Assembly (NCBI RefSeq): GCF_000315625.1 | Contig: NW_005434533.1 | Span: forward strand, 1-35,228 | Direction: 5' to 3' | DNA length: 35,228 bases | Source: Guillardia theta CCMP2712 | Taxonomy: Eukaryota > Protista > Cryptophyta | Part shown: one piece after another, positions 1 through 25,569 of the stretch | Layout of the letters: every line of letters begins with the position of its first letter | Position numbering within the stretch: the stretch's first letter is position 1 | The notes under the pieces: model-generated | Databases searched by the model: none | Told to the model about the DNA's origin: nothing | Seen by the model: only the letters and a program-made list of their open reading frames with translations | Position numbers and translations under genes: made by a program

Positions 1-124
1 CCCACCTCTTCCCTCACCCGGCAATCGTCCCTAACGCCTGTCTCCTTGGTGCTAGGCTTGTTTTCCTTCCCTGCCTGTGCTCCATAGGTGGCTTGCCCAT
101 GAGCCGCGCCTGCCCCCCATCGGA

Positions 125-3100
125 CTAGGTCGACTCGCTTCCCCTTCTTGCCGTCCATAGCATGTGTTGCACCACCAGCAGTTGCTTGATTGCTGCTGTC
201 TTGATGCCTTCCCATTCCGTGTCTTCCACCCTTAGCACCCTGAAATTCTCATGCCATTCCCTTTCCATGATCGATCCTTTCACTCCTGCTATGAATGTTG
301 CTTGTTCAACTTCATGATCAGGTAGCAAAGCTGTGATTTCTGCTCGTAGGGGGGCATATTTCTCTTCCTTTTCCTGAAATTTCTTCTTCAGGCATTCCAG
401 GCTTGTTTGTCCGACTCCGTCATATTCCGATGTCCTTGCAAATTCGATGAGGACAATGCGTTTGATGCTTGCAAAGTAGCAGCAACCGTCAGGTATCCAG
501 TGCCCTTCTCGGTGCATTGAAGTCCCCATCGCTTCCATCACGATGCGTATTGGGGTGTCCCACCATGAATTGACCTGTACCCTTTGTTTCCTCCAACTCT
601 GCTGCAGTCTTACCTTGATCTTCTTCATGACTTCATTGTGTGCTTTTTGAATCATATCTTGGAACTGCTTGCACGCTAGCTGAACATGACCCCAGGTTTC
701 TTCTCGATCTGGACAGTGAGGACAACATGGTGAGTTAGTCTTCCCCCATTGAAAGAGCTTCTTCCTCGTCGGTGCTGAGAAGGTGATCGCTTGGATAGCT
801 GTTCGCGTAACTGACCCTTCACATTGTTTGAACCCTCTCCCTAGTAAATCTCTTCCCACATGCATTTCGAGCATGAATTTCTCTGTCAAGGTGAGGTCTC
901 CCGCTCGAATCCTTGCCACCATTGTCTGTTGTCTGATAATGTAGTCCCATTTCTTCAAGCGATCGAATCCTGATGTAGGATTTTCTTCTCCTGCAATGAT
1001 GAATTCCATTGGACTATCGTAGATTGCTTTCTCCCATCCCGAGGCAAATGTTTGTTTTGCTTGCTTGGCCATTTCCTTTGCCTCTTGAATGTTTCTATGA
1101 GATTCTTTTGCTAGTTGGAGTCGGATCCTGATTCCCCTCCCTTCGAGTTTCCTCATGCAAGTGAGTAACCGATCATGTAGGTCCTCCAGCAGTTCGTCTT
1201 CGTATCGCATGGTATCCATTCGCAACGTATTTGTCATAAAGCGGTGGAAACGTGTGGACTGGTACATTATTGTGACTTGATTTCCCCTTTTGATCTGTAT
1301 TCCTTCCTCAAGGACATGTTGCAGAAGTAAACCGATTGCGATTGTGTTCGCTCGGATGATGCTGCACTTCCCATTGATTTTCATCCCTCCTCCTGACGTC
1401 ATCTCTTTTTGTTGGAGAACATATCCTACTCGCATGGATCTGTTTTTTCTGCCCTGCATGATGTCGCCTTCAATAGCTGCTGTGAAATGCCTTCCGCCTT
1501 GATGATCGCTGCACGGCTGGATCTGATCCCTTCGTCTGTTACACAGCTCCTCATACGTTGGGAGGATGTTGTCCTGAAGCTGGACTCGTAAGTATGTTGG
1601 GAGTGTGTGCCTAACTAGTATCCATAACTCCTCTGCAGTCTTCATCAAACACCTATTTCCTGTCTGCCAGAAGTTTGCTGCATAGGCTATTTGAGCGCCT
1701 TTCGGGACCCGGCTGATAATTTCAAAACCTTCTGGTATCTCATCAATGTTATTCTTCCATCCTATCAGAATGACATGTATTGTATCCAGGATTTGTTCAC
1801 GAAATCTCTTTTGTTTGTCCATCCAAACCACCACTCTGTGCAGTTCCCTTGCTCTCTTCTTGTCCAGAGCCTGGGGATGTGTGTGTAGGGTAGGCCAGTT
1901 ACGAAATGTACTGATGTCGCATTCTGTAATCTCCGCTAAATGTTGTAAAAACTCGTATGCCAATGGTTGTGTTGTTTGTTGGCGAACCTCTGATACTACC
2001 TCCTCGAGTTGTTGCCACCATGCTGTAGCTTCTGTTTCGCCGTCGTCCAATGCATTAACTATTTCCAGCAGCAGATGGATGCTTTGATTGCAGTCTCTTC
2101 GGTTATTACCGTCCTCTTCCCTTGTTGCAGATGCGAAGGGAGCCGAGTCCAGTGACGCTTCCAACCATTCTATTGGTGGATCCACAGTCTTGCTTTCTTC
2201 AATTTGAGATCGCTCAAAGATGGCTATGTTCCCTTGAACTTTGAAAGGTATATTGCTTGTAGTGTAACAGAATCTTTCTTGCTGATTCCCTCCTTCACCA
2301 TAACAGGTGGGGTCATGTTGGAGCCACCGCCTCAAATTTACCCGGGTACAAGCCTTCGTATTCGTTTCCTCTCTCCCTTGGTCCGGTCTGGCTAGTTTCT
2401 TGTGTGGCTGAAGTTCATGTGGGCTAGCCTCCCTTTTTCCTTTCCTTCTCTTGTTTAGCGGCTTCCCCTCCTCCCTGGCTGGCCTTCTTCTCTTCCCTGT
2501 TCCTGCCTGCTCAAGTCCGAGTTTGGCCCAGATGACATTCGCTTGCAGATATCGTGCAAGGATTTCTTCTGCTTGTTCCCTTTGCTTTGGGAATGGCCAG
2601 AGTCGGATGGGCAGGTGCAGGGAGATGCCCTCGGTATCCGGGACGGGTAAGACACTTGTCATGGAGTGGAAGCCTACTTGGGGCAGTAGTCTCCATGCCT
2701 TTGCAAAACTCTCCCAGCCTTGCCGAGCAGGAGATGTAGGTAAGGAGTTTTCTCCGGACAGCAGGGAGTTTTCTTCTGAGAGCATCTTGTCCTCCAGGTC
2801 GTGTAAGATGGCTATTGTCCCCGGTTTCATCCTGCTTTCAATCATTTCCCAACTGATGGTGGTCTGCATTTTTTCCGCTATCCAGATTGCGAGTCTTTCC
2901 GGTCCTCTTATCTCTTCGTTCTCTTTGAGTCTGCCCGATCTGATTTCTCGTTGTAGCTGGTTTATTGTTTGACACCCCCATTGGTTGCACCATGATGTTA
3001 GTTTGTGGATCAGACTGCTTTTGATATCATCATCCACCCTGCATTTCTTATTTGTTTCTTTCTCTAGATACCGAATCGCCGCCCTTCCCAAGATGGGTGC

Positions 3101-3643
3101 TGGATGGGGGAGTTGGAGGCCTCCTCTGTCCCCAGGTAGGTGAAAGATAGCGTTGCTTGTACTCTTGCTCAGTCCCATAGCTCTTTTGAATGCTCTGGTC
3201 CAGAGGGTATCTAAGGTTTGTAAGTCTGACCAAGACCAGCTCACCAGTACCGCCGAGTATCTAAAGATATTGACGATGCCTACCTTCACCAGGTAATATT
3301 TTTGGGCTGCCGAGTAAGCAGATGATTCAATCAGCTTTGTCAGTTCTTTTGTCTTCTCCAAGATGTGTTCTTTCTCTCCCCACGTGAAGGGGCAGGTGTG
3401 CGCCTTGTTGCCTCTTCCTCCTGGTCTCCACAAGCTGATCCGGATCCCTAGATATTTGAACCATTTTGTCGGTGGTAGGTTCACAAACTCCTTGTCAAAG
3501 AACTTGATGGTTTGTGTTCCTGGGATCTCCCTCCTTAGCCGATAATCAAAGCTGGTGATTTCAGATTTCTTCGTGTTCAGTTCTAATCCACTCCATCGAC
3601 AGAATCGTTCTACCACTTGAACAAGCGTTTTCATCTCTCTCAC
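125..3643 (-). pseudogene. E1 ORF2, C-terminal part: RT domains 6-7 and thumb, degenerate RNase H, CCHC knuckle, restriction-like endonuclease; separated from the N-terminal part by a frameshift
   Basis: SGLELNTKKSE, FKYLGI, RGGLQLP; CPHC-x4-ETWGHVQLAC; AHN; PDG...LIEFARTSE...KEEKY...FIAGVKG. Confidence 0.85.
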
Positions 3644-6600
3644 TGAATGTCAAGGTCGTCTGCAAATGACAGATTATTAGGGTGTTGAGTTGCAATCTCG
3701 TTTTGTTGATCAAGTTGTCTGGACAAGATGCTGAGCAGAAGATTTGTTTTTGGCGGACTTGCGGGGCTGCCTTGGGGTAATCCTCTGAGAAGTGGGATTG
3801 CTGCTGTATCAAACCTCTCAGTCTGAATTTGCAGAGCTATGCCTTGACTGCAGCTGACTGCGACGTCGACATCGCGCTGGTGGAATCCATATACCTCCAT
3901 GATTTTTGCGATGGATTCAACCGCGACGTTATTGAAGAAGTTGGCAAAGTCGAGGTATAACAGTATAATGTTGTTTTGACTGCTCTGGGCCTCCTCGATG
4001 ATGTTAAGTAGTCTATGACCTTGACGGATCGTCCCGCCCTCGGGTCGGAAACCCTCTTGGTTATCTGTTAGCAGCTTGTGCCTCTCAGCTGCTTTTGCCA
4101 GTCTGTGTGCTATCACCGCTTGGAAGATTCGCGTCACCGACGAGAGGATACATATAGGACGCATATTTTCCAGAACATGACAGAGCTCGTTTTTTGGAAG
4201 GAGTCTGACTCGTGCTAGCATGTTCAACAACGTTTTGTCTCCTGTCAACGCTCTACTGATCACTTTTCCTATCTCCTCCTTTGCGCTGTCAGGTAAAGCT
4301 TTCAGGATCTCGTTTGAGATCAAATCCATGCCTGCTGCCTTGCGATTTGATACTTTTTGAATCCAAATCTGAATTTCTCCTGGCTCCAGGGGAAAAGCAA
4401 TTTCTATTTCCCTGGTCGGGTGTTGATCAATGTTCGTGGGAGAGTTGAATTCCGGTGGTTGGACGGAGGTGAATGATTGACACTGTTTGCAGAAGAAGAG
4501 GATCGTCGTTTCTTCGTTCTTCTGACCTTTGTCATATAGCGGGATCAGTCGTCCTCGTGTTTGACACTCCGCCTTTGCGCAGGTTCCATTCGTCGTGCAG
4601 CCGTTGACTGCGAAGAAGGTTGCCGTGTGGGTTTCATCTTCGAGTTCGCTAGCCAATCTCATAGGGAGAAATTGCTCGATGTTCTTGTATCCTTCTAGGC
4701 GCCACCCTCCTGGTTGTGGGAGCAGTTTCCGAATGATTTGTACAATCAAATGTGCTGGCGCCACGGTGAGGGAGAGCTTCTTTGATGTTTGATTTCCCGC
4801 CCCGAGGACCTCAACTTGCAGTAAGGTTTGATGTTTTGCATTCCAAAAAGTTTTGCTTGATTCTTTGGAGCTGTTTTGCAGGAATGCTTCCATCAGCGGA
4901 TCCAGGTCCTGTAAATACTCTAGCTCTGATTGCTGCAGCGCTGGTTGGAGATCGCTCCATGAGGTGAGTTCGATTGTATTTGGGTGGCATTTCTCTGGCA
5001 GTTGGCTACTCATTGGGGCTTTGGGCTTATAGTCCGATTTCTTCCCCATTGCATTCTGGGACTCTTTACTCCCTATCGTGCCCAGTCGTCTTCGGCGTTC
5101 CTCGCAAGCTTTCAGGAAGGTTTGTTGGTCCTGTTCGGTGCAGATCTCCTTGAATTTGATCATAGTCTCTCTTAGTTCGGCGTTGATACTCGACTCCCTG
5201 TGTGCACGATCAATATAGTCTGTGATTTCTGATGCGCTTCTCAGATCCTTGCGAAGTTGCTTAATCTTCCTTTTCAGGTCCATTTGAATCTTCGATGAGT
5301 ATCGCTTCCCACCTGAGGTTCGTAGGGGGATTTCCTTAATGGGAAGGGCAGTTGTTATCAAATTGATAATGTCGCAATCTTGCTGTAGAGCTTGTGCCGC
5401 TTGTATCTTCTCGTCGAGAGCCATTGCCCATTCCACGCCTAGTCGTCCCGATATCTTTTCTATCTCTACCACCCGCTTCTTTCGTCGAAGAATGGCATCT
5501 CGGTCCTTCCTTTGTGTGAGCATTTCAACCGTTGGAATAAATTGTTCGCCCTTATCATCTAGCGCAGTCACATTCACCACCAGTGCCCTGTGATCGACTG
5601 CGGCTCCTATGATGCAGTCTTCTGCGGTCTCTGATATCAGGCTTACTGTGCGAGATGAATGATGCAGAGCGAAGACATGGTCTAATTTGGCTTGGTGGTG
5701 GCCCTGTTTGTACCATGTGGAGAAGGTGAAATGCGAACTGCTTCTGCTCATCTTTTCGCAGGTGACCATCTGATATCGCCCCAGCTCATTTAAGTTTCGT
5801 TCCATTTCCTCATCTGCGCGGTGCACGTTCGAGTTGATCCCGTACCCTACTCTCGTGCAGATCTCTGCAAGCTTTCGAGATGCGTTGAAGTCGCCTCCGA
5901 CGATGCTGAGCTTAATGTTTGGGTCCATCTTGAGCATCTGGCTCAGCGCCTTCCACATGTTGTCTCGGTCCCTCCCCTCCGATGCGATAGGGAAATGTAC
6001 GTTCGCCAACACTATTGTTTCTTTTTTGCGGCCAACGTGTAAAACCTGTATTCTTTTTTGGGAGACCTCGCGCTCCTCTTCCATGGCGAAGTGCCATGGC
6101 AGGGGGGGGCGAGGTGCAAGGTCAGCATGCGCTAATGTCATGAGGCGTAGGTCACTCTTACCCTTTCTCCCGCCCCCCGTGCCTTTCGTGATAAATACTC
6201 GATAGCATCCCCATTCCTTCTTGATCATCGTTCGGAGAGCTATCTCTTTCCTCCTCCCCCCTACCAAGACCTCCTGCAGCATTACCACGCTCGGCTGGTA
6301 TGTCTCAATCAGGTATCCCAAGATGTGTTTCAGCACAAACTGGCTGCACCCATTAACATTTTGAGAGATGATGTTGCCTGGGGTGTTATCCTTTCTGTGC
6401 ATCTCCACCCATGATGGTTGCTCTGATCTTTCTGTTCGCATTGCATTGTGAGGTTTTCTACCTGTTGTTAGTATTTGTTCCTCTTCCCTATTGGCCCATT
6501 GAAGTTGATGTGGTACTCCCCTTCGATCTCTTGCCGGGGAGTGCGTCTCCTCCTCCTCCCTAGTTCCCCTTACATCGTTCGAAGCTTGTTCTTTGTGCTT

Positions 6601-7728
6601 GCCCACTGGGGGGAGCGATGTGGCCTGCGGCGGTAGTGAGTCCATCTGTTCTGACCTTTCATATGTCCGCAGGTCCGCCATGTTTCTCGCTTGCCACGGT
6701 TCTTGCTCTCCCTGCTCCATCTCTTGTGCCTGGGTCACCTCTGCTGCTTGCCATTCCTTGTACCCTTTATCTTGCGCGTGTTGTAAAGCTCTGCAGATGC
6801 CTTTGATCGTTTCTCGCATGCGCACTTTTCCTGGATCCTCCACCCAAAGCGCATCCAGCAGCCGGTGCCTCATCCTCTCGAGCCATTGCTGGGGTGGGGG
6901 GACGCCTTGCTGCCTACCTGTTTTTGAGATGTCTCGTTGTGTCGGTCTGTTTGTCTTTGCGATCAACAGCAAATGCAACAGTATGAAGATCCCACAGTTG
7001 TGATTGTCTGTTTGTTGTAGCTCAGTTGACAGGTAAACCCGCCATGTCGTTGCATGTTCCTGCTGGTCGCTGAACGCCTCCGTGACAATCGTCGCCGCGA
7101 GTGTGGCTAAGTCCATTCGTTGTGCGCCTTCCAGCTGAAACTGTGCCTCCCTTTGACTTCTGACAATCCCCAAGTCTCTCTCAGCCGTGCTGAGTGAATC
7201 AACAATGCGTATTCTTTTTGTGTCAAAATCTGCCATTAGTAGAATCCAATGATTGCCATTCTCTACGCACGGGAATAAGAATGGCTGGGCTGCCCCGGCT
7301 AGTAGTCGCTTTGCTCTCTTTGTCCTCCCCTCTTGATCTCTCAAACAAGCTACTATTCTCGGGAGGACAATAGTCCCTCTCGGCGACTCGACCTGGTTTC
7401 TAGTTTGCGCGCTCGCGTACCTCTTGTCTCGTAGCCATGCTACTTGAAATCTGTCTTCCAATGGTTCGATACCTTCGCTTGCCTCGAGGATTATCGCCTC
7501 CACAACATCTTCGGAGAGAAAGCCAGCTTCTCCCGAGTTGAGTAGCGCCGCTAATCCATATTCTCTGTTTTGTTCCCTTCGACTCCAGGGGATCTCCCCT
7601 ACTAGGTCGAATGTTTGTGCCGTTTTTTGATTTTCTTTGTCTTTGTTTTTCTCACCTTCTTGTCCTTCCACCTCACCCTTGTGCCAATTGTCCCACCTGC
7701 CCTCGTCTCCTCCTGTTCCTGCGTCCAT
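3640..7728 (-). CDS. E1 ORF2, N-terminal part: Ulp1/C48-type cysteine protease, AP endonuclease, Cys-rich motif, RT domains 0-5
   Basis: NHWILL..D and QQTDNHNCGIF; SQNVNG, MLQE, NVHFP, GGDFN, LDHVF, VDHRAL; KAAGMD, RPICILS, QEGFR, LDFANFFN, RGLPQGSPASP, SFADDL. Confidence 0.92.
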   Translation of the reverse strand: MDAGTGGDEGRWDNWHKGEVEGQEGEKNKDKENQKTAQTFDLVGEIPWSRREQNREYGLAALLNSGEAGFLSEDVVEAIILEASEGIEPLEDRFQVAWLRDKRYASAQTRNQVESPRGTIVLPRIVACLRDQEGRTKRAKRLLAGAAQPFLFPCVENGNHWILLMADFDTKRIRIVDSLSTAERDLGIVRSQREAQFQLEGAQRMDLATLAATIVTEAFSDQQEHATTWRVYLSTELQQTDNHNCGIFILLHLLLIAKTNRPTQRDISKTGRQQGVPPPQQWLERMRHRLLDALWVEDPGKVRMRETIKGICRALQHAQDKGYKEWQAAEVTQAQEMEQGEQEPWQARNMADLRTYERSEQMDSLPPQATSLPPVGKHKEQASNDVRGTREEEETHSPARDRRGVPHQLQWANREEEQILTTGRKPHNAMRTERSEQPSWVEMHRKDNTPGNIISQNVNGCSQFVLKHILGYLIETYQPSVVMLQEVLVGGRRKEIALRTMIKKEWGCYRVFITKGTGGGRKGKSDLRLMTLAHADLAPRPPLPWHFAMEEEREVSQKRIQVLHVGRKKETIVLANVHFPIASEGRDRDNMWKALSQMLKMDPNIKLSIVGGDFNASRKLAEICTRVGYGINSNVHRADEEMERNLNELGRYQMVTCEKMSRSSSHFTFSTWYKQGHHQAKLDHVFALHHSSRTVSLISETAEDCIIGAAVDHRALVVNVTALDDKGEQFIPTVEMLTQRKDRDAILRRKKRVVEIEKISGRLGVEWAMALDEKIQAAQALQQDCDIINLITTALPIKEIPLRTSGGKRYSSKIQMDLKRKIKQLRKDLRSASEITDYIDRAHRESSINAELRETMIKFKEICTEQDQQTFLKACEERRRRLGTIGSKESQNAMGKKSDYKPKAPMSSQLPEKCHPNTIELTSWSDLQPALQQSELEYLQDLDPLMEAFLQNSSKESSKTFWNAKHQTLLQVEVLGAGNQTSKKLSLTVAPAHLIVQIIRKLLPQPGGWRLEGYKNIEQFLPMRLASELEDETHTATFFAVNGCTTNGTCAKAECQTRGRLIPLYDKGQKNEETTILFFCKQCQSFTSVQPPEFNSPTNIDQHPTREIEIAFPLEPGEIQIWIQKVSNRKAAGMDLISNEILKALPDSAKEEIGKVISRALTGDKTLLNMLARVRLLPKNELCHVLENMRPICILSSVTRIFQAVIAHRLAKAAERHKLLTDNQEGFRPEGGTIRQGHRLLNIIEEAQSSQNNIILLYLDFANFFNNVAVESIAKIMEVYGFHQRDVDVAVSCSQGIALQIQTERFDTAAIPLLRGLPQGSPASPPKTNLLLSILSRQLDQQNEIATQHPNNLSFADDLDIQ

Positions 7729-9941
7729 TAAGCTTGTGCCGCAGGGGGGGAGTCTAGTGACATCCCCTCTGCGTCGTCCGCCTTGCTCCCTTCCTCCGGT
7801 TCCTCTTCCATTCCGGCCTCTTTCATCTGTAGTTCAGTGCTCAACATGAACTTTAGTTCGTCGTTATCTCCCAGCATTCCTACCGAAGAGATTACTGTCT
7901 CCTCTAGGAATTTATTCAATGCAATGAAGAGCAGGTCAGTCTTAAACTGCTTCTCTTCTTTGGGGGCAAAAGCGCTTTGCTTGCGCTTCGCGACCTTCCA
8001 TGTATGCTTCTCAACGATTCGTTGGACTCGCTCTTTGAAGCCCTTACTCTGGGTATCCCATGTCGCTCCAGTGCCTTTATCAGCCCATTCTTGCAGCGTG
8101 GAGAAGGACGCGTTGCCTGGACTGTCTAAGGCGACCTGCATGTCGTGCACAGCATCGTCAAGACGAAGTAAGGTCTTTCCTTGCTGTTGTAGGTCATTGT
8201 TAACTACTTCCGCGATAGCTGTCTTGATCTCAGCAATTACTACCTCTGCTTCCGCGTCGGGCAGGTTTGTTTCGTTGATGATTGAGTTCAGTTCAATCTC
8301 TTTCCACACGGTTCCGCCTGCTCTGGTTCCCGGCGTTTGTGATCTGGCTTGGTCAGATTGATCCTGTGTTGCCTGAGGCGACACTTTGAGGTTCAGACTA
8401 CTTGCTGTCGTCTGGATCTCAACTGTGCCTTGCCAGCAGAGAAGGTGTGTGGGGAATTCAGCCATCATCTTTCTTGCACTCCTTTCACTTCGTAGCCTGA
8501 GAATAATTCCAGACCCATCCCACATCCCCGTCTCTGCGTCACATTGGATGTGTACCCGCTGCAGCTCTTTTTCAACCTGTGGGTCCCAGCATGCGACAGA
8601 CCTCCGGATGTTTCGGATGACTTTGGCTCTGCCCGTTTCGTCACTGGCGCAGATTTTTTCAATCTCACTTCGAGAGAACTTCCCTGATGGCACTGGGGAG
8701 GAGATTTGCACTGAGTACAGCATCTCTGCCCCCGTTGCCGTTGCCGCCTCCTGTCGCACAGCATTCTTCGTATGCTTGAGCATAGTCGTTGCTTCCATTT
8801 GAACTGAAAACCATTTCAGTATTTTGTCATTCTCTGAGACCAATCCCAAAGTGACTCCTGCTCGATCTTTTCCATGTCGATCGAATGCCTGGAGGACGAT
8901 GTCCGCTACTTCCAGGCTCGAACAAGTCGCGATCCAGTCTACCTCTCTGTTCTGGTTGACTGTGTCTATTCCTACCGCTGCAAACACCTTCTTTGGCGGC
9001 AGGTTCCTCTTGGGGGGGAGGTTCACTGTCATTCCCGCGTTTGGGATCAGGTCGATAATTGCTAGGCCCTGTTTCAAGCACAACTGCCTGTAGATCTCAC
9101 ATATATCACCTGTACTCGAATCATTGAGCTTAAGGAGTTGGGCCACCTCCGCTAGGATTCCGACTCTGCCCATGTTCTCCTTCTTTGGTCGCATCTTGAA
9201 CGAGATCGGTGGGTTGGCTGCTGGGTTCACTGCTAGGATCCTCCTTCCAGCCACCTTAAAGGTACCTTCTCCTTTCCAGAATTTCTCTGCCGCCTCGTTG
9301 CGGACAAAGGTGATCACTGCTGGGATCTCTTCTGCCTTCGCCAGGTCAGGCTTGAGGGGAGCCTTGAAGATCAAACTCCTGCTGTCTTGCGTCTGATCTA
9401 CGATCAAGCCTTGCTCTTCCAGCTTGACGCATAAGTTTTCAACCTGTCTGGAGAAGTATGCAGGTATCCCTAGTACCTTCATGGTAATCGTCTGCACACT
9501 CGTGCCCTGGTCATCATAAGACCTGGCCTCCATCTGCCGTTGCCTGTCTGCTAGAAATTCGGACAGGTACCACTGCCTGGCATCATCCCCCCACTGCCCG
9601 AGACCTTTCAGACTCTCCAGTGATGAAGGTTCAGCAAAGCTGCATGTGTGACTGATGGCTTCGGCTAAGGCTTCCAAGGATATCTCTTTGGCTTTCAGAG
9701 CTTTGCTCGTCCTGCTTTTGGGATTCTGCCTTGCGAAGTCATCCAGTCGTCGCACAAGCTCAGCTGGTGACGGCATCGTTCCAGTTTCCGTCTGCCTCTT
9801 GAGGTAGCTGGAGGTACGGTACTGCACGATCTCGTCAGGGTTCACAATAGATATTGGCCACATGCTTCGGAGCATTCTCAATGGTTTCCCAAGCTTCCGT
9901 CGTTCCTGGCGGCTCTTACTCCACCAGCGCAGGGGTACCAC
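7728..9941 (-). CDS. E1 ORF1, probable RRM-type nucleic-acid-binding protein (true ATG probably at 9875 or 9776)
   Basis: 737-aa open frame directly upstream of ORF2 with a TAATG overlap; RRM-like pattern ITMKVLGIP...AVITF...FKVAGRRILAV; homologous to the 10664-12807 ORF. Confidence 0.8.
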   Translation of the reverse strand: MVPLRWWSKSRQERRKLGKPLRMLRSMWPISIVNPDEIVQYRTSSYLKRQTETGTMPSPAELVRRLDDFARQNPKSRTSKALKAKEISLEALAEAISHTCSFAEPSSLESLKGLGQWGDDARQWYLSEFLADRQRQMEARSYDDQGTSVQTITMKVLGIPAYFSRQVENLCVKLEEQGLIVDQTQDSRSLIFKAPLKPDLAKAEEIPAVITFVRNEAAEKFWKGEGTFKVAGRRILAVNPAANPPISFKMRPKKENMGRVGILAEVAQLLKLNDSSTGDICEIYRQLCLKQGLAIIDLIPNAGMTVNLPPKRNLPPKKVFAAVGIDTVNQNREVDWIATCSSLEVADIVLQAFDRHGKDRAGVTLGLVSENDKILKWFSVQMEATTMLKHTKNAVRQEAATATGAEMLYSVQISSPVPSGKFSRSEIEKICASDETGRAKVIRNIRRSVACWDPQVEKELQRVHIQCDAETGMWDGSGIILRLRSERSARKMMAEFPTHLLCWQGTVEIQTTASSLNLKVSPQATQDQSDQARSQTPGTRAGGTVWKEIELNSIINETNLPDAEAEVVIAEIKTAIAEVVNNDLQQQGKTLLRLDDAVHDMQVALDSPGNASFSTLQEWADKGTGATWDTQSKGFKERVQRIVEKHTWKVAKRKQSAFAPKEEKQFKTDLLFIALNKFLEETVISSVGMLGDNDELKFMLSTELQMKEAGMEEEPEEGSKADDAEGMSLDSPPAAQA

Positions 9942-9950
9942 AGATCTGCA

Positions 9951-10289
9951 TGCCAGGAAATAAGGAACCTGCCAGGAAATAAGGAACCTGCCAGGAAATA
10001 AGGAACCTGCCAGGAAATAAGGAACCTGCCAGGAAATAAGGAACCTGCCAGGAAATAAGGAACCTGCCAGGAAATAAGGAACCTGCCAGGAAATAAGGAA
10101 CCTGCCAGGAAATAAGGAACCTGCCAGGAAATAAGGAACCTGCCAGGAAATAAGGAACCTGCCAGGAAATAAGGAACCTCCTAAACATAAGGAACCTTAG
10201 GGTTCTAAACCCTAAACCCTAAACCCTAAACCCTAAAGGAAATAAGGAACCTGCCAGGAAATAAGGAACCTGCCAGGAAATAAGGAACC
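9951..10289. repeat. 19-bp tandem repeat TGCCAGGAAATAAGGAACC: 12 perfect copies at 9951-10178 and ~2.7 more at 10238-10289, interleaved with telomeric repeats
   Basis: Directly counted. Confidence 0.97.
10205..10237. repeat. Telomeric tract (CCCTAAA)4+
   Basis: Direct; preceded by an inverted TTAGGGTT at 10197-10204. Confidence 0.95.
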
Positions 10290-10291
10290 TG

Positions 10292-10338
10292 AACCCTAAA
10301 CCCTAAACCCTAAACCCTAAACCCTAAACCCTAAACCC
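10292..10338. repeat. Telomeric tract (CCCTAAA)6+
   Basis: Direct. Confidence 0.97.
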
Positions 10339-10663: not shown

Positions 10664-12807
10664 TCAAGCTCGGTACGGGCTCGCCCCGTCTTCTTCCTCG
10701 CCATCGCCTTGCTCTTCCTCCATGTCTTCCTCTTCTTCGTCATCTTCCCTCATCTCCACCCGCAGTCGGTCCTTCTTGTCCACCTTCAGCGAGCAGGCCA
10801 GCACGTGCATCTCTGCGAATTTACTCAGTGCTATGAACAGGAAGCTAAGAGATCGACGCTCGATGTCGTCGCTCTCCGCCTCCTGCTCAAGCTCAGCAGC
10901 TGCCGTTGCCCGTGGCGAGAACGCGCTGCCCCTCCTTGCCTTCTTGCTCTCTCCTTGCACGCGAGTCCAGCGCTTGCTCTGCAGCCACTTCCCCAGCTTC
11001 TCCTTGAGAACGTTGCGTCCCACTCCCTGCTCCTCTGGCGTCTTCGCCCACTCTCCCAGCGACATGAACTCCAGGCTCCCCGGAGAGTAGAACGTGTCGT
11101 GGAGGTTGCCAACAGCCTTGTCCAGGACCAGCTTGATCGGCTCGCTCGTCCCCGTCTCGTTCAAAGAAGCTGCATCTTCGATGACTGCTGACAGCTCGCT
11201 GACAAGCTGCATGTCCTCTTGGCTTGACGGAGATGCTGCCTCCATTGTGATCCTCTCCAGGTCTGTAAACTCCAGCCACTCTCCCTCGCTCTCCGCCTGT
11301 CGCTGCGCTGCGTCGCTGGTGCCCCGCTGACCAGCCGCCTCAGAGTCAGGCTCCTTGTCGAAGCCGACTGCTTCGAGCTTGGTTGCTGCGCCTTCGAGAT
11401 AGAAGGGCAGCTCCTTCATCATGCGTCGAGCATCCTCCGTGGAGCCGAGGAGGATGCATAGCTTGGACCCGTTCCAGGACTTCGTGTTCAAATCCTCCTC
11501 CATGTCGATGCCTTCAACTTTGATCTCGAGCCTGTTAGCGATCTCCAACAAGACTCTCTTGACTCTTGCGATGGACGTGTTGCCGCCGTTGCACAGCCCC
11601 TCCATCTCCTTCCTCGTGAAGCGACCAGATGCCGCCGTCGACTTGATGATGATCTTGATCTCCTTGCCGTCCTTGCCGCCTGCCTTCTTCTGCATCCTTG
11701 ATGCCTTCTTCAACTTATTTCTGGACACAAAGCGATCAGCTGTCAACTCGACTGCGAGCGCCTCTCTGATCTTCGGGTCCTCGCTGAACAGAGTCAGGTG
11801 TACTCCCTCCATCGCTTCGCTCTCTCGGAAAGCTCGAAATGCTGTATCATTCGCCTCTGGGCAGCTCGAGGAGACGATCCACTCCACCTCCCTCTGTCTC
11901 CAGATGACGTTGGCCCCTACAGCGATGAAGCCTTTCTGACCTAAGCCTTTGTGGACTTGCTGTCCTGGCGCCCCAGCGACCAGCATGCCTGCCAGCGGCT
12001 GGAGTTGGACCGCTGCAAGGGACTGGCGCAGCAGCTGATACCGGTAGACATCAGCAATTTCGGCTGTTGTCATGCCGCCCAAGGTTAGCAGGTGAGTCAG
12101 CTCTGCCAAGCTGCCCCCTTTGCCCCAGGGTCCTCTCTTGGCTCGAATCTTGAAAGATCGATCGTGCACGATGCTCACATGTACAGCTGTGAACTTGCGA
12201 CCATCGATCGCGAAGTCCTCTCTTCCCTGCCAGAGCTTCTCCGCTTGTGCATTGCGGAGGAAGGAAACAGTCACCGGGATCTCCTCAGCACTCGCTATCT
12301 CGGGTCTATACGGAGCCTTCCACATGATTGCTTTACTCTCTTGCACTGAGTCTACGATCAGTCCGATCTCTTCGAATTTCTTCTTCAGCTTTTCTTCATG
12401 GTTGACATACACCGAGGAGATGCCCAGGAGAGTCACGGAGATGAAGGAAGTCACCTCGTTGCCTGCTGAGACGGTGTATGTCTCGACCTTCTCCTTCTTG
12501 GCTTCTTCAATCTGCTGCATAAACCACTCTCAGTGGATGCGTCACTCCATCCAGTCATTGCTTCTTGTAGAAGCTCGCGTCGTGCCTGCTGACATGTCGA
12601 GCGGATGGCTTCTGCGATAGCGTCGGGGGTGCATCCCTCCACAGCCTTGCAAGCCTGAGCTGTCCTGTTAGGAAAACGTTTCGCGAAGCTCTTCACTTTC
12701 TCGACAAGATCAGCTTCGAGGACCGCGGCATCCACAAGCTCGCCCTGCGTGTATTGGCATGATCTCCGATGATACAGGCGCGATGATGTTGCGAACACTT
12801 TCATCAT
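10664..12807 (-). CDS. E2 ORF1 homolog, frameshifted near 12527-12532 (ORF-track frames 12451-12807 and 10664-12520)
   Basis: GLIVDSVQESKAIMWKAPYRPEIASAEEIP aligns with E1 GLIVDQTQDSRSLIFKAPLKPDLAKAEEIP; upstream frame ADLVEKVKSFA..AIAEAIRSTC aligns with E1 AELVRRLDDFA..ALAEAISHTC. Confidence 0.8.
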
Positions 12808-12928: not shown

Positions 12929-12961
12929 CCCTAAACCCTAAACCCTAAACCCTAAACCCTA
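12929..12961. repeat. Telomeric tract (CCCTAAA)4 CCCTA
   Basis: Direct. Confidence 0.96.
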
Positions 12962-13357
12962 GAAGCTGTTTCAACTCTACCTAACCCTTGCTCGCAGCTT
13001 CCTCCGGTCCCCTTGCGCTCTCCCTACGCGCCGCAGAGCAGCATGCTTTTACTAAGGCCGGCCTGCTTTTACTAAGGCCGGCCTGCTTTTACTAAGGCCG
13101 GCCTCTGCTTTTACTAAGGCCGGCCTGCTTTTACTAAGGCCGGCCTGCTTTTACTAAGGCCGGCCTCTGCTTTTACTAAGGCCGGCCTCTGCTTTTACTA
13201 AGGCTGGCCTGCTTTTACTAAGGCCGGCCTCTGCTTTTACTAAGCCTGGCCGGCCTGCTTTTACTAAGGCCGGCCTGCTTTTACTAAGGCCGGCCTGCTT
13301 TTACTAAGGCCGGCCTCTGCTTTTACTAAGGCCGGCCTGCTTTTACTAAGGCCGGCC
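12962..13357 (-). mobile_element. E3: 5'-end stub (~100 bp leader plus terminal repeat array) of a third related element
   Basis: CTTGCTCGCAGCTTCC and the following leader are shared with E2 12850-12912. Confidence 0.72.
13044..13357. repeat. 20-bp tandem repeat TGCTTTTACTAAGGCCGGCC, 15 copies, five junctions carrying an extra TC
   Basis: Directly counted. Confidence 0.96.
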
Positions 13358-23004: not shown

Positions 23005-25569
23005 CTACCACAACACACACTTGTCCTTGGGGTTCATCCTGGAGTTGATCGGGCACTTCCAGTCCCTGGCGAAGTCTTCGTTCTGCGTTAGCGGTCCGTT
23101 GACTCGAAACTTGTCCGGCGAGTGCTCGTCGGTCTGCAAGGCCATTTTCATCGACGGGTCCCGCTCCTTGTCGCACCAGTTCTGCCCATACGACACCCAG
23201 AAGAGATGCTTCTGCCAGATGGCTGGCTTCGCCTGCTCCTCGCACAGCTGAAACGTGAGCGGCATGTCCTCCTTGTCGATCCCTCGGCAGAAGTCGTCTG
23301 TATCAAACGTCAGCGTTTTGCCGACAAGCCTCAATACTTGTACCTTTGAACCAGTTCAGCCATGCGTGATAAGCTGCCTTGAGGCCCCCGAAATCTGCGA
23401 TGTTCTCTCCAAGAGTAAGGTTTCCCTGTCAGCTCGTCAGCGTCATCGGTGTGACAGCCCTCCGTCTCACCTTGACATGCATTCCCAGCATCTCAAACTT
23501 GGAGTAAAGCTTTGCGATGCACTGCCCACGAGCTTCGAACTCATCTACAGTCTTCCTGTCCCACCAGTCTCTTAATCTGCTCTCCTGATCGTACTTGCGT
23601 CCAGTGTTGTCGAACCCATGCGTCAGCTCGTGGCCCATGATCGCTCCTACCCCCCCGAAGTTTCTTGACATGTCGTACTCAGCGTCAAAGAAAGGCTTCT
23701 GCAGCATCCCGGCTGTGATAAAAAGACCGTTGACAGCGTTGTCGTAGTAGCTGTTGACTGACATCACGCTCATGCTCCACCTCCTTCTCTGTGGGGCAGA
23801 GAACAGGCGCGCAAGCTTCTTCATCTTCCTGTGCTCGCAGGAGACCAAGGAATTGTTGAAGTAGGAGGTGGGGCTCACTTCCCAGTCGCACTCATCCCAC
23901 TTGAGAGGGTGCCCGCACTCAAAGAAGATGTTGGCCAGCTTCTCCAACGCAGCTTCACGAGCCTGCTCAGACATCCAAGAAACCTGTTCGAGGTCCTGCT
24001 TGAAGGCATCGCGAATGTAATCCAGCATCGTGAGAGCAATCTTCCTGTCCTCTTCCGAGAAATAGTTCTCGATGAAGAGTTGGTCAACGATCATCGGCAA
24101 GGCGCTCTTGGCCGCTGCTACACATTTGTGCCATCGCTCAGGCTGCTTTGAGATGCCCATCAGGTTGGCGTCGACTTTCAAAGTGGCTTCGAGGAACTCA
24201 TGCGAGAGCAGAGGCGAGAGGTTGTAAACCAAATGCCAGCGCAGATACGGGATGAGACTCTTTGCACTCCGCTTGCCGAAGAAGTCATTCAGCCTTTGGA
24301 AGAATTCCGGGGCTTTCACAACAATATTGTTCCTCTCGGTTCCCACTTGCGAAATCCCCATACGGTCAAACAGCATCGTGAAGTTTACGTTGGGATAAGA
24401 TTCGACGAGTTCCTGTTGAGAGATATGCTTGAAGGATTTCTTCAAAGACACGTATGGCTCCAAACGCTGATAGATCGCCAACTCCGTTTCGATTTCGAAG
24501 CAAATGTCAGCATCTGTGTTTGCTTGTTCCTTCGACAAACCAGCCAGAGTCAGCTGGGTGACAATGAATTCCCGGTAGGCAGCACGATGAGACTTCATCT
24601 CGTCGTTATTTTCAGTGTAGAAGGTGTAGTCTGGAAGAATAAGGCCTCCGGTGCCGAGGTAGAAGTTCATCAGCTGTGGCTCCAGGTTGTCAGCTCCCAC
24701 CCACCAATCAAAAAACGCCGGGACATCCCAAAACTATCGCAGTCAAGTCAGACCAAACGGCACAACATGTGTAGAATCGACCTGAAACTGAGACATGACT
24801 TCCCACAGGTCTTGATAGGTCTCGATATTCGCAATCTGTTCGAGGTAGGGCTGCAACGGTTTGGCTCCTTGCTGCATTGAACTCGATCAAAACAGGCCAC
24901 GAAGATTCGAATCATAAACCTCGTTGACATAGTCCACCATCATGCAAGACCTGTACCAGTCACCTGCTTTCCCTTGGTCTTTCTCGAGAACCTGAAGAAT
25001 TCCATGAGCTCAAGCTAAGTAAACTAGTCGCCACCACCTTCCGCATCTCGTCGTAGATCTTGGCAGAGCCTCCATCCCAGGAGCGTGCAAACCCCCCGAG
25101 GTCCTCAGGTATTTGAACATGTTCCTCAAAACCACCACAAGCATACTATTTCGTGGAAACACGTCAAACCAAGTTCACACCGTTACAAACTAGCACCTGA
25201 TAAAAATCTTCGCAAGGATCTGCACTCAAATCCATCTGTCTCACCTACTTCAACGTGAGTGCTCGACCATCCACGCACTTGTCGTCCACACACCACTGAA
25301 GCTGGGAAATGCGCTGCTGCTGCCCGCCCACGTTGCACTCCAAGTGGCGCGATCGAGACGCCGAGGGGGTCATGCACACTCAAGGTTGAGATTCTCTGAG
25401 ATTCAAGGGAGCAGATCAGCAAGGGCAGGGCAGGGCCATGGCGACTGACCTGAGGTGGGGAAAGGAACGCAATGGATCCTATGATTGAAAGAGCTGCTGC
25501 TGCTGCTGCGAACCCCAGCGAGGCGAAGACAGCGTTCTTGCTGCTCATGCTGTGCAAGCGCTCTGCCAT
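23005..25569 (-). CDS. M13 family zinc metallopeptidase (neprilysin/ECE-like) with N-terminal membrane anchor
   Basis: [51 protein letters not shown]. Confidence 0.93.

Follow-up and report, generated by a model that had tools for sequence, protein, structure and literature searches.

A 35,228-nucleotide stretch of Guillardia theta CCMP2712 DNA (NCBI RefSeq assembly GCF_000315625.1, contig NW_005434533.1, positions 1 to 35,228; the window) raises the question of whether one retrotransposon without long terminal repeats (a non-LTR retrotransposon) can carry two kinds of endonuclease, an apurinic/apyrimidinic endonuclease-like domain (APE) and a restriction-like endonuclease (RLE), and what the pair would do at a telomere. 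The window is a G. theta subtelomere. As judged from its sequence, positions 1-10338 on the minus strand very probably represent one copy of a Dualen/RandI-group non-LTR retrotransposon within a subtelomeric array, belonging to a family built of ORF1 and an ORF2 polyprotein of about 2575 residues. The ORF2 of this family encodes, in order, an Ulp1/C48 protease, an AP-type endonuclease, a Cys4 cluster, a reverse transcriptase (RT), a degenerate RNase H-like region, a CCHC zinc knuckle and an R2-type RLE.

An earlier, sequence-only reading had described the copy in the window as one ORF2 with both nucleases apparently intact. The catalytic residues of the APE and the RLE are indeed all present, but ORF2 itself is broken by a frameshift in this copy. 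The listing of open reading frames (ORFs) gives three adjoining minus-strand ORFs at 1-10338, namely 7728-9941, 3640-7728 and 125-3643, and the last two, which lie in different frames, are parts A and B of what had been taken for one ORF2.

The element and its two nucleases

When metagenome contigs were scanned with the tail of the RT, a single related locus was returned, L001 (10,737 nucleotides). This locus has an ORF1 of 719 residues, a TAATG overlap identical to that of the window copy and one uninterrupted ORF2 of 2575 residues with C48, APE, RT, CCHC and RLE. The features of the window copy are as follows.

9951-10338, minus strand: element 5' end, with about 18 repeats of a terminal 19-mer followed by (TTTAGGG)n
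7728-9941, minus strand: ORF1, 737 residues, GTG start
7726-7730, minus strand: TAATG stop/start overlap of ORF1 and ORF2, kept in L001
3640-7728, minus strand: ORF2 part A, 1362 residues, with C48 protease, APE, Cys4 cluster and RT through the FADD box
6934-7275, minus strand: Ulp1/C48 cysteine protease domain, part A residues 152-265, with the HW...D...NHNCG catalytic motifs present
5554-6408, minus strand: AP-endonuclease-like domain, part A residues 441-725, of exonuclease-endonuclease-phosphatase (EEP) fold
4480-4581, minus strand: Cys4 cluster (C-x4-C ... C-x2-C), directly upstream of the RT
3652-4392, minus strand: N-terminal part of the RT through the FADD box (Pfam RVT_1, 2e-17)
3647-3651, minus strand: frame break, a 10-nucleotide gap relative to L001 and to contigs from public runs, directly after FADD-L, past which the codons change frame
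125-3643, minus strand: ORF2 part B, 1172 residues in the other frame, with the remaining RT and thumb, a long linker, the RNase H-like remnant, CCHC and RLE
1004-1501, minus strand: RNase H-like remnant, carrying E, N, Q and K where the RNase H of the relatives has its four catalytic carboxylates
128-931, minus strand: CCHC zinc knuckle (632-727) and RLE core (PD 485-499, IEFAR 434-451, KEEKY 356-370), the last 268 residues

Parts A and B were searched separately throughout and never joined. The APE motifs claimed upstream of the RT were found in place on the minus strand: SQNVNG (6349-6366), MLQEV (6268-6282), GGDFNAS (5878-5898), KLDHV (5674-5688) and AVDHRA (5584-5601). The catalytic N of QNVNG, E of LQE, D/N of GDFN, D of LDH and D-H of VDH are all there. 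Pfam Exo_endo_phos matched the domain at E 0.01, below the curated cut-off. An iterative search among the long relatives of the element located an APE upstream of the RT in 13 of them; in their alignment GDxN, two D and the final D-H are invariant, with near-invariance at the N of QNVNG and at the Q of LQE/D. Structure prediction returned an EEP fold. The AlphaFold model (predicted local distance difference test, pLDDT, 80; predicted TM-score, pTM, 0.84) was matched by Foldseek to Tdp2, ExoIII, APE1, the L1 endonuclease and the TRAS1 endonuclease (1wdu) at E of about 1e-11, and the APE profile matched ExoIII (2e-10) and L1 EN (3e-9) among PDB sequences.

The C-terminal motifs likewise lie at the places assigned to them: CCPHC (713-727), WGHVQLAC (671-694), KAHNE (632-646), WIPDG (485-499), LIEFAR (434-451) and KEEKY (356-370). 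In an alignment with 23 relatives, P-D and the K and Y of K..KY are invariant; near-invariance is seen for all four ligands of the CCHC knuckle, for the AHN histidine and for the IEFAR arginine. This region is covered by no Pfam family, and phmmer with ORF2 part B against PDB gave nothing useful; R2 was reached only by the alignment profile, which matched R2Tg at E 1e-23 with CCHC, HN, PD, the acidic residue and K..KY aligned. The predicted structure (pLDDT 95, pTM 0.90) had R2 retrotransposon proteins as all of its top seven Foldseek matches (TMq 0.60-0.71, E 2e-9 to 7e-5), followed by viral cap-snatching PD-(D/E)xK nucleases. The C-terminus thus models as a PD-(D/E)xK endonuclease of R2 type, as had been proposed. 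Because Pfam alone is weak here, the case for the APE and the RLE is built on profiles and folds, and with profile and predicted-fold matches for each, the presence of both nuclease domains is not due to chance.

The RT between them is split by the frame break. The best PDB match of the window RT is R2 (1e-12), followed by L1 ORF2p (1e-7), and the L001 RT scores 83, 60 and 56 bits with R2 proteins and 53 bits with L1 ORF2p. The RT of Dualen/RandI branches between the RLE clades (R2 group) and the APE clades (L1 and later); for the present RT these scores, together with the Dualen architecture of its nearest long relatives, give indirect evidence. Upstream of the RT, the Cys4 cluster is invariant in all 15 aligned Dualen-type proteins and is probably a zinc-binding module, which may serve in binding DNA or RNA. 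Pfam recognised Peptidase_C48 (PF02902) both in the window (E 4e-5) and in L001 (3e-9). A jackhmmer search with the Ulp1 piece against a small set of long relatives gave no match, yet Pfam finds C48 in those same proteins.

The combination of APE and RLE occurs only in Dualen (RandI) and defines the group (PMC4640811, PMC9977147). An AP-type endonuclease N-terminal to the RT, a CCHC and PD-(D/E)xK endonuclease C-terminal to it and a cysteine protease domain, three marks of Dualen/RandI, are found in the element, and the Dualen/RandI assignment made from sequence is supported as one of domain architecture. The long proteins retrieved with ORF2 part B have the RT, a linker of 700-1000 residues and CCHC-RLE in a single chain; Pfam additionally found C48 and RNase H in them, and SET in three. 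The nearest of these (P0013, P0170 and P0019) combine SET, C48, APE, RT, RNase H, a zinc finger and RLE, and the order APE-RT-RLE is common to 13 distant relatives. Close protein fragments came from Rhodomonas salina, Hanusia phi and G. theta.

ORF1 is 89% identical in amino acids between the window and L001. It had no Pfam match, its language-model neighbours scored just 0.77, and no similarity was detectable between it and the ORFs that lie upstream in the more distant relatives L002-L004. The two-ORF layout had been taken to bring the element closer to APE-clade organisation. The layout is real, but it is not special: in distant relatives, too, ORF2 is preceded by an ORF that adjoins or overlaps it, and in L002 the overlap is ATGA in place of TAATG. 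A UAAUG overlap of ORF1 and ORF2 is present in SART1 too.

The region between the RT and the CCHC knuckle is probably the remnant of an RNase H. The same E, N, Q and K stand at the catalytic positions in L001 and in the protein P0001, hhalign of the region against the relatives' RNase H gave a weak match (E 0.08), and its language-model neighbours are RNase H clusters (score 0.92). Support for homology of the region is weak.

Selection was estimated as the ratio of non-synonymous to synonymous substitution rates (dN/dS; Nei-Gojobori) between the window copy and L001. The ratio is 0.18 for the APE, 0.15 for CCHC and RLE together (0.03 for the knuckle), 0.05-0.11 for the RT, 0.16 for C48, 0.16 for ORF1 and 0.11 for the RNase H-like region. 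These values indicate that both nucleases were kept by purifying selection while the two copies diverged.

One of the two nucleases might still be a catalytically dead relic with a structural or DNA-binding role, the element working as a plain APE-type or RLE-type long interspersed nuclear element (LINE). The RNase H-like region illustrates that this lineage keeps a domain under purifying selection after loss of its catalytic residues, and APE-only and RLE-only LINEs such as L1 and R2 perform both cuts with one nuclease. Against this, the catalytic residues of both domains are all kept in the window, in L001 and in the distant relatives, dN/dS is 0.15-0.18 for the APE and the RLE, and a telomere-flanked deletion derivative in G. 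theta retains the RLE catalytic motifs. A dead relic is accordingly an unlikely account of either domain.

The frame break in ORF2

Nucleotide alignment with L001 places a clean 10-nucleotide gap in the window between 3651 and 3650. Part A ends in SFADDLDIQ followed by a stop that the frameshift creates, and part B starts with VREMKTLVQVVERFCRWSGLELN, the continuation of the RT past its active-site box. Part A matches the Pfam RVT_1 profile at positions 2-156, and part B matches it at 165-205; the two parts are therefore one gene in two pieces, and it is within the RT that the frame shifts. Of the L001 ORF2, part A aligns with residues 1-1401 (73% identity) and part B with 1408-2575 (83%). At the joint L001 reads SFADDLVLIAHSVREMK, and contigs of four public runs stop matching the window at 3646 and 3651, with overhangs that translate in frame as FADDLVLIAN-SVREM. 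Since L001 has a single ORF and the run contigs are in frame, ORF2 of the family is continuous, whereas the copy in the window is, as assembled, broken. L001 has both nucleases and the RT in one ORF, and the run contigs read in frame across the break, but in the window copy two frames are needed. The gap puts the RLE out of frame with the APE and the RT and partly removes the RT active-site hairpin. As assembled, the window copy is most likely dead, unable to make a protein with both nucleases.

A harmless break, due either to an assembly error or to programmed ribosomal frameshifting in a functional copy, is quite improbable. The two halves of ORF2 do lack any other stop across 1362 and 1172 codons. 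However, the relatives and the public-run contigs have 10 additional bases and need no frameshift, the gap removes conserved RT hairpin residues after FADD, and a loss of 10 nucleotides is atypical of homopolymer error. Programmed frameshifting in ORF2 was itself judged unlikely, given that the relatives read in frame with 10 more bases.

That the nucleases come from two elements, with an APE-type LINE lying inside or next to one of RLE type and the frame break as the joint, is scarcely credible: the ORF is split precisely between the APE/RT half and the RLE half, but the break falls inside the RT domain (FADD upstream, RT motifs D/E and the thumb downstream), L001 reads through as a single 2575-residue ORF and 13 distant relatives have APE, RT and CCHC-RLE in this order within one protein, which rules out a nesting artefact.

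Telomeric junctions and a possible division of labour

The location of the family bears on what the two nucleases might do. The 5' end of the window element adjoins (TTTAGGG)7. The 19-mer at this end (window 9951-10291) occurs once at the L001 5' end (194-215), after (TAGGGTT)3, so that the array in the window represents the terminus of the element itself, amplified. L001 has (TAGGGTT)n repeats on both flanks. At the end of G. theta scaffold JH993060.1 (L005), elements are separated by TTTAGGG arrays, with 3' ends at |TAGGGTT. Three full-length 3' ends all abut ...|TAGGGTTTAGGG, the joins being (TAA)n or (TAC)n | TAGGGTT, and most 5' junctions come after TTTAGG. The sense strand of the element always runs with the G-strand. 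Telomere-repeat flanks, a single orientation and a fixed junction phase, by which telomere-specific LINEs are recognised, are thus all found, over a handful of junctions; the 3' end of the window element itself lies beyond position 1.

Integration would proceed by target-primed reverse transcription into the telomeric repeats. Because the sense strand runs with the G-strand, the priming 3'-OH would come from a C-strand nick (after CCCTA) and not from the natural G-overhang, and with a nicked C-strand as primer, integration would require an endonuclease. The constant 3' junction phase would fit a C-strand 3'-OH at CCCTA. The 5' junctions after TTTAGG would fit either a stagger of 4 bp or the loss of 3 bp, which are indistinguishable on a repeat.

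How the two nucleases might divide this work is a matter of guesswork. The foremost guess, which falls a little short of probable, is that the APE nicks the C-strand for priming, with the second cut, on the G-strand, left to the CCHC-RLE, as most 5' junctions follow TTTAGG. That one nuclease makes both cuts, the other being accessory, is conceivable but doubtful, and the reverse assignment, with the RLE priming on the C-strand and the APE cutting the G-strand, is a guess that seems less likely again. A telomere-specific Dualen that keeps both nucleases, one for each strand, with the APE at CCCTA^AA priming and the CCHC-RLE at TTTAGG^G, is a tentative proposal, more likely wrong than right.

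Several points weigh against this account of a two-nuclease Dualen at telomeres. RNase H is listed among Dualen domains, and no Pfam RNase H was found in the window or in L001, while the distant relatives are positive. The 10-nucleotide gap could be an error of the source assembly. The constant junction phase could reflect the tail of a read-through RNA annealing to the repeat and not cleavage specificity. Finally, cuts are not readable from sequence, and any division of labour between the APE and the RLE is a guess.

To date, the closest described systems are the cryptophyte Dualens, with SET, C48, APE, RT, RNase H, CCHC and RLE (Lescot et al. 2016, PMC5029228). [quoted passage not shown] In contrast to them, the G. 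theta family lacks SET, has a separate ORF1 of about 720 residues with the TAATG overlap and has its RNase H catalytic residues replaced. Its copies are embedded in TTTAGGG repeats, unlike the more distant relatives L002-L004. The Chlamydomonas Dualen, on which the group was founded (Kojima and Fujiwara 2005, as related in PMC4640811 and PMC9977147), likewise has APE, RLE, RT, RNase H and a cysteine protease. According to those accounts its host is a green alga and its insertions are dispersed, with very long target-site duplications (median 900 bp) for Dualen-4b_cRei, whereas the G. theta family has telomere-repeat junctions in fixed phase. The sharing of first- and second-strand cleavage between the two nucleases had already been proposed for the Chlamydomonas Dualen (PMC9977147).

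R2, an RLE-type LINE with solved structures (9dou, 9nl2, 9nl3, 8gh6), likewise has a CCHC and PD-(D/E)xK endonuclease C-terminal to its RT, which is the best PDB match of the window RT; unlike the G. theta element, it has no APE, C48 or ORF1, and it targets 28S ribosomal DNA. The Bombyx APE-type LINEs TRAS1 and SART1 also insert into telomeric repeats in one orientation and have an APE domain of the same fold. They differ from the G. theta family in belonging to the R1 clade, in having no RLE or C48, in their poly(A) tails and in their target, TTAGG.

The pairing of APE and RLE, and the cryptophyte layout of a protease plus two nucleases, published in 2015, were therefore already known, and this headline is not new. 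The location in telomere repeats, the separate ORF1, the absence of SET and the degenerate RNase H have been described less; the literature searched gave no link of Dualen to telomeres in this sense. The telomeric setting adds value in that the family is seen only in TTTAGGG repeats at G. theta chromosome ends, in the handful of junctions available. A repeat target of 7 bp makes nick mapping simple, and the role of each nuclease in the presumed transitional state from RLE to APE is directly testable. [quoted passage not shown] A 2025 survey reported LINE/Dualen to be expanded in all cryptophytes save G. theta (PMC12747079). The present element corrects the impression of a G. theta without Dualen elements; its Dualens probably lie in those chromosome ends of which the 2012 assembly gave poor resolution.

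Neighbouring elements and minor observations

Two further features of the window lie outside the element.

10664-12520, minus strand: ORF of a neighbouring ORF1-only element, an ORF1 paralogue (30% identity over 579 residues, E 9e-68)
23432-24700: M13 peptidase ORF, 100% identical to a G. theta UniRef entry

The end of G. theta scaffold JH993060.1 holds sequence with 98.8% identity to the ORF of the ORF1-only element; this match and that of the M13 peptidase identify the host as G. theta. Neighbouring elements in the window (10339; 12950-12975, minus strand) are 3'-truncated relative to the upstream element of L001. The truncated copies run straight into telomere repeats at ...GCTCGCGC|GGGTTTAGGG, and the phase there is unlike that of the full-length ends. 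The full-length 3' ends (L001 10600-10640, L001 150-170 and L005 11810-11835) carry the trinucleotide runs (TAA)3, CATAA and (TAC)4. These runs come after an AATAAA-like signal, and there is no poly(A).

The deletion derivative mentioned above is a 2.5-kb telomere-flanked element at L005 9311-11834, in which an ORF1-like N-terminus is fused in frame to the RLE core. It is annotated as GUITHDRAFT_116523 (419 residues); HN, PD, E and K..KY are intact, and the knuckle lacks its first two Cys. The RLE of this derivative is also represented by a transcript fragment from MMETSP (P0173).

Run X11, which is guessed to be RNA, has 15 listed joints within window 1000-6900, and 11 of them are GT..AG on the plus strand and skip 51-365 nucleotides. 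These joints are antisense to the ORFs of the element and suggest that antisense transcripts, read inward from the side of the telomere, are spliced. Metagenome runs from freshwater, lakes and runoff contained up to about 0.7 of the 31-mers of window 2600-4600. G. theta is known as a marine organism, and the freshwater matches could stem from carry-over or from close freshwater relatives.

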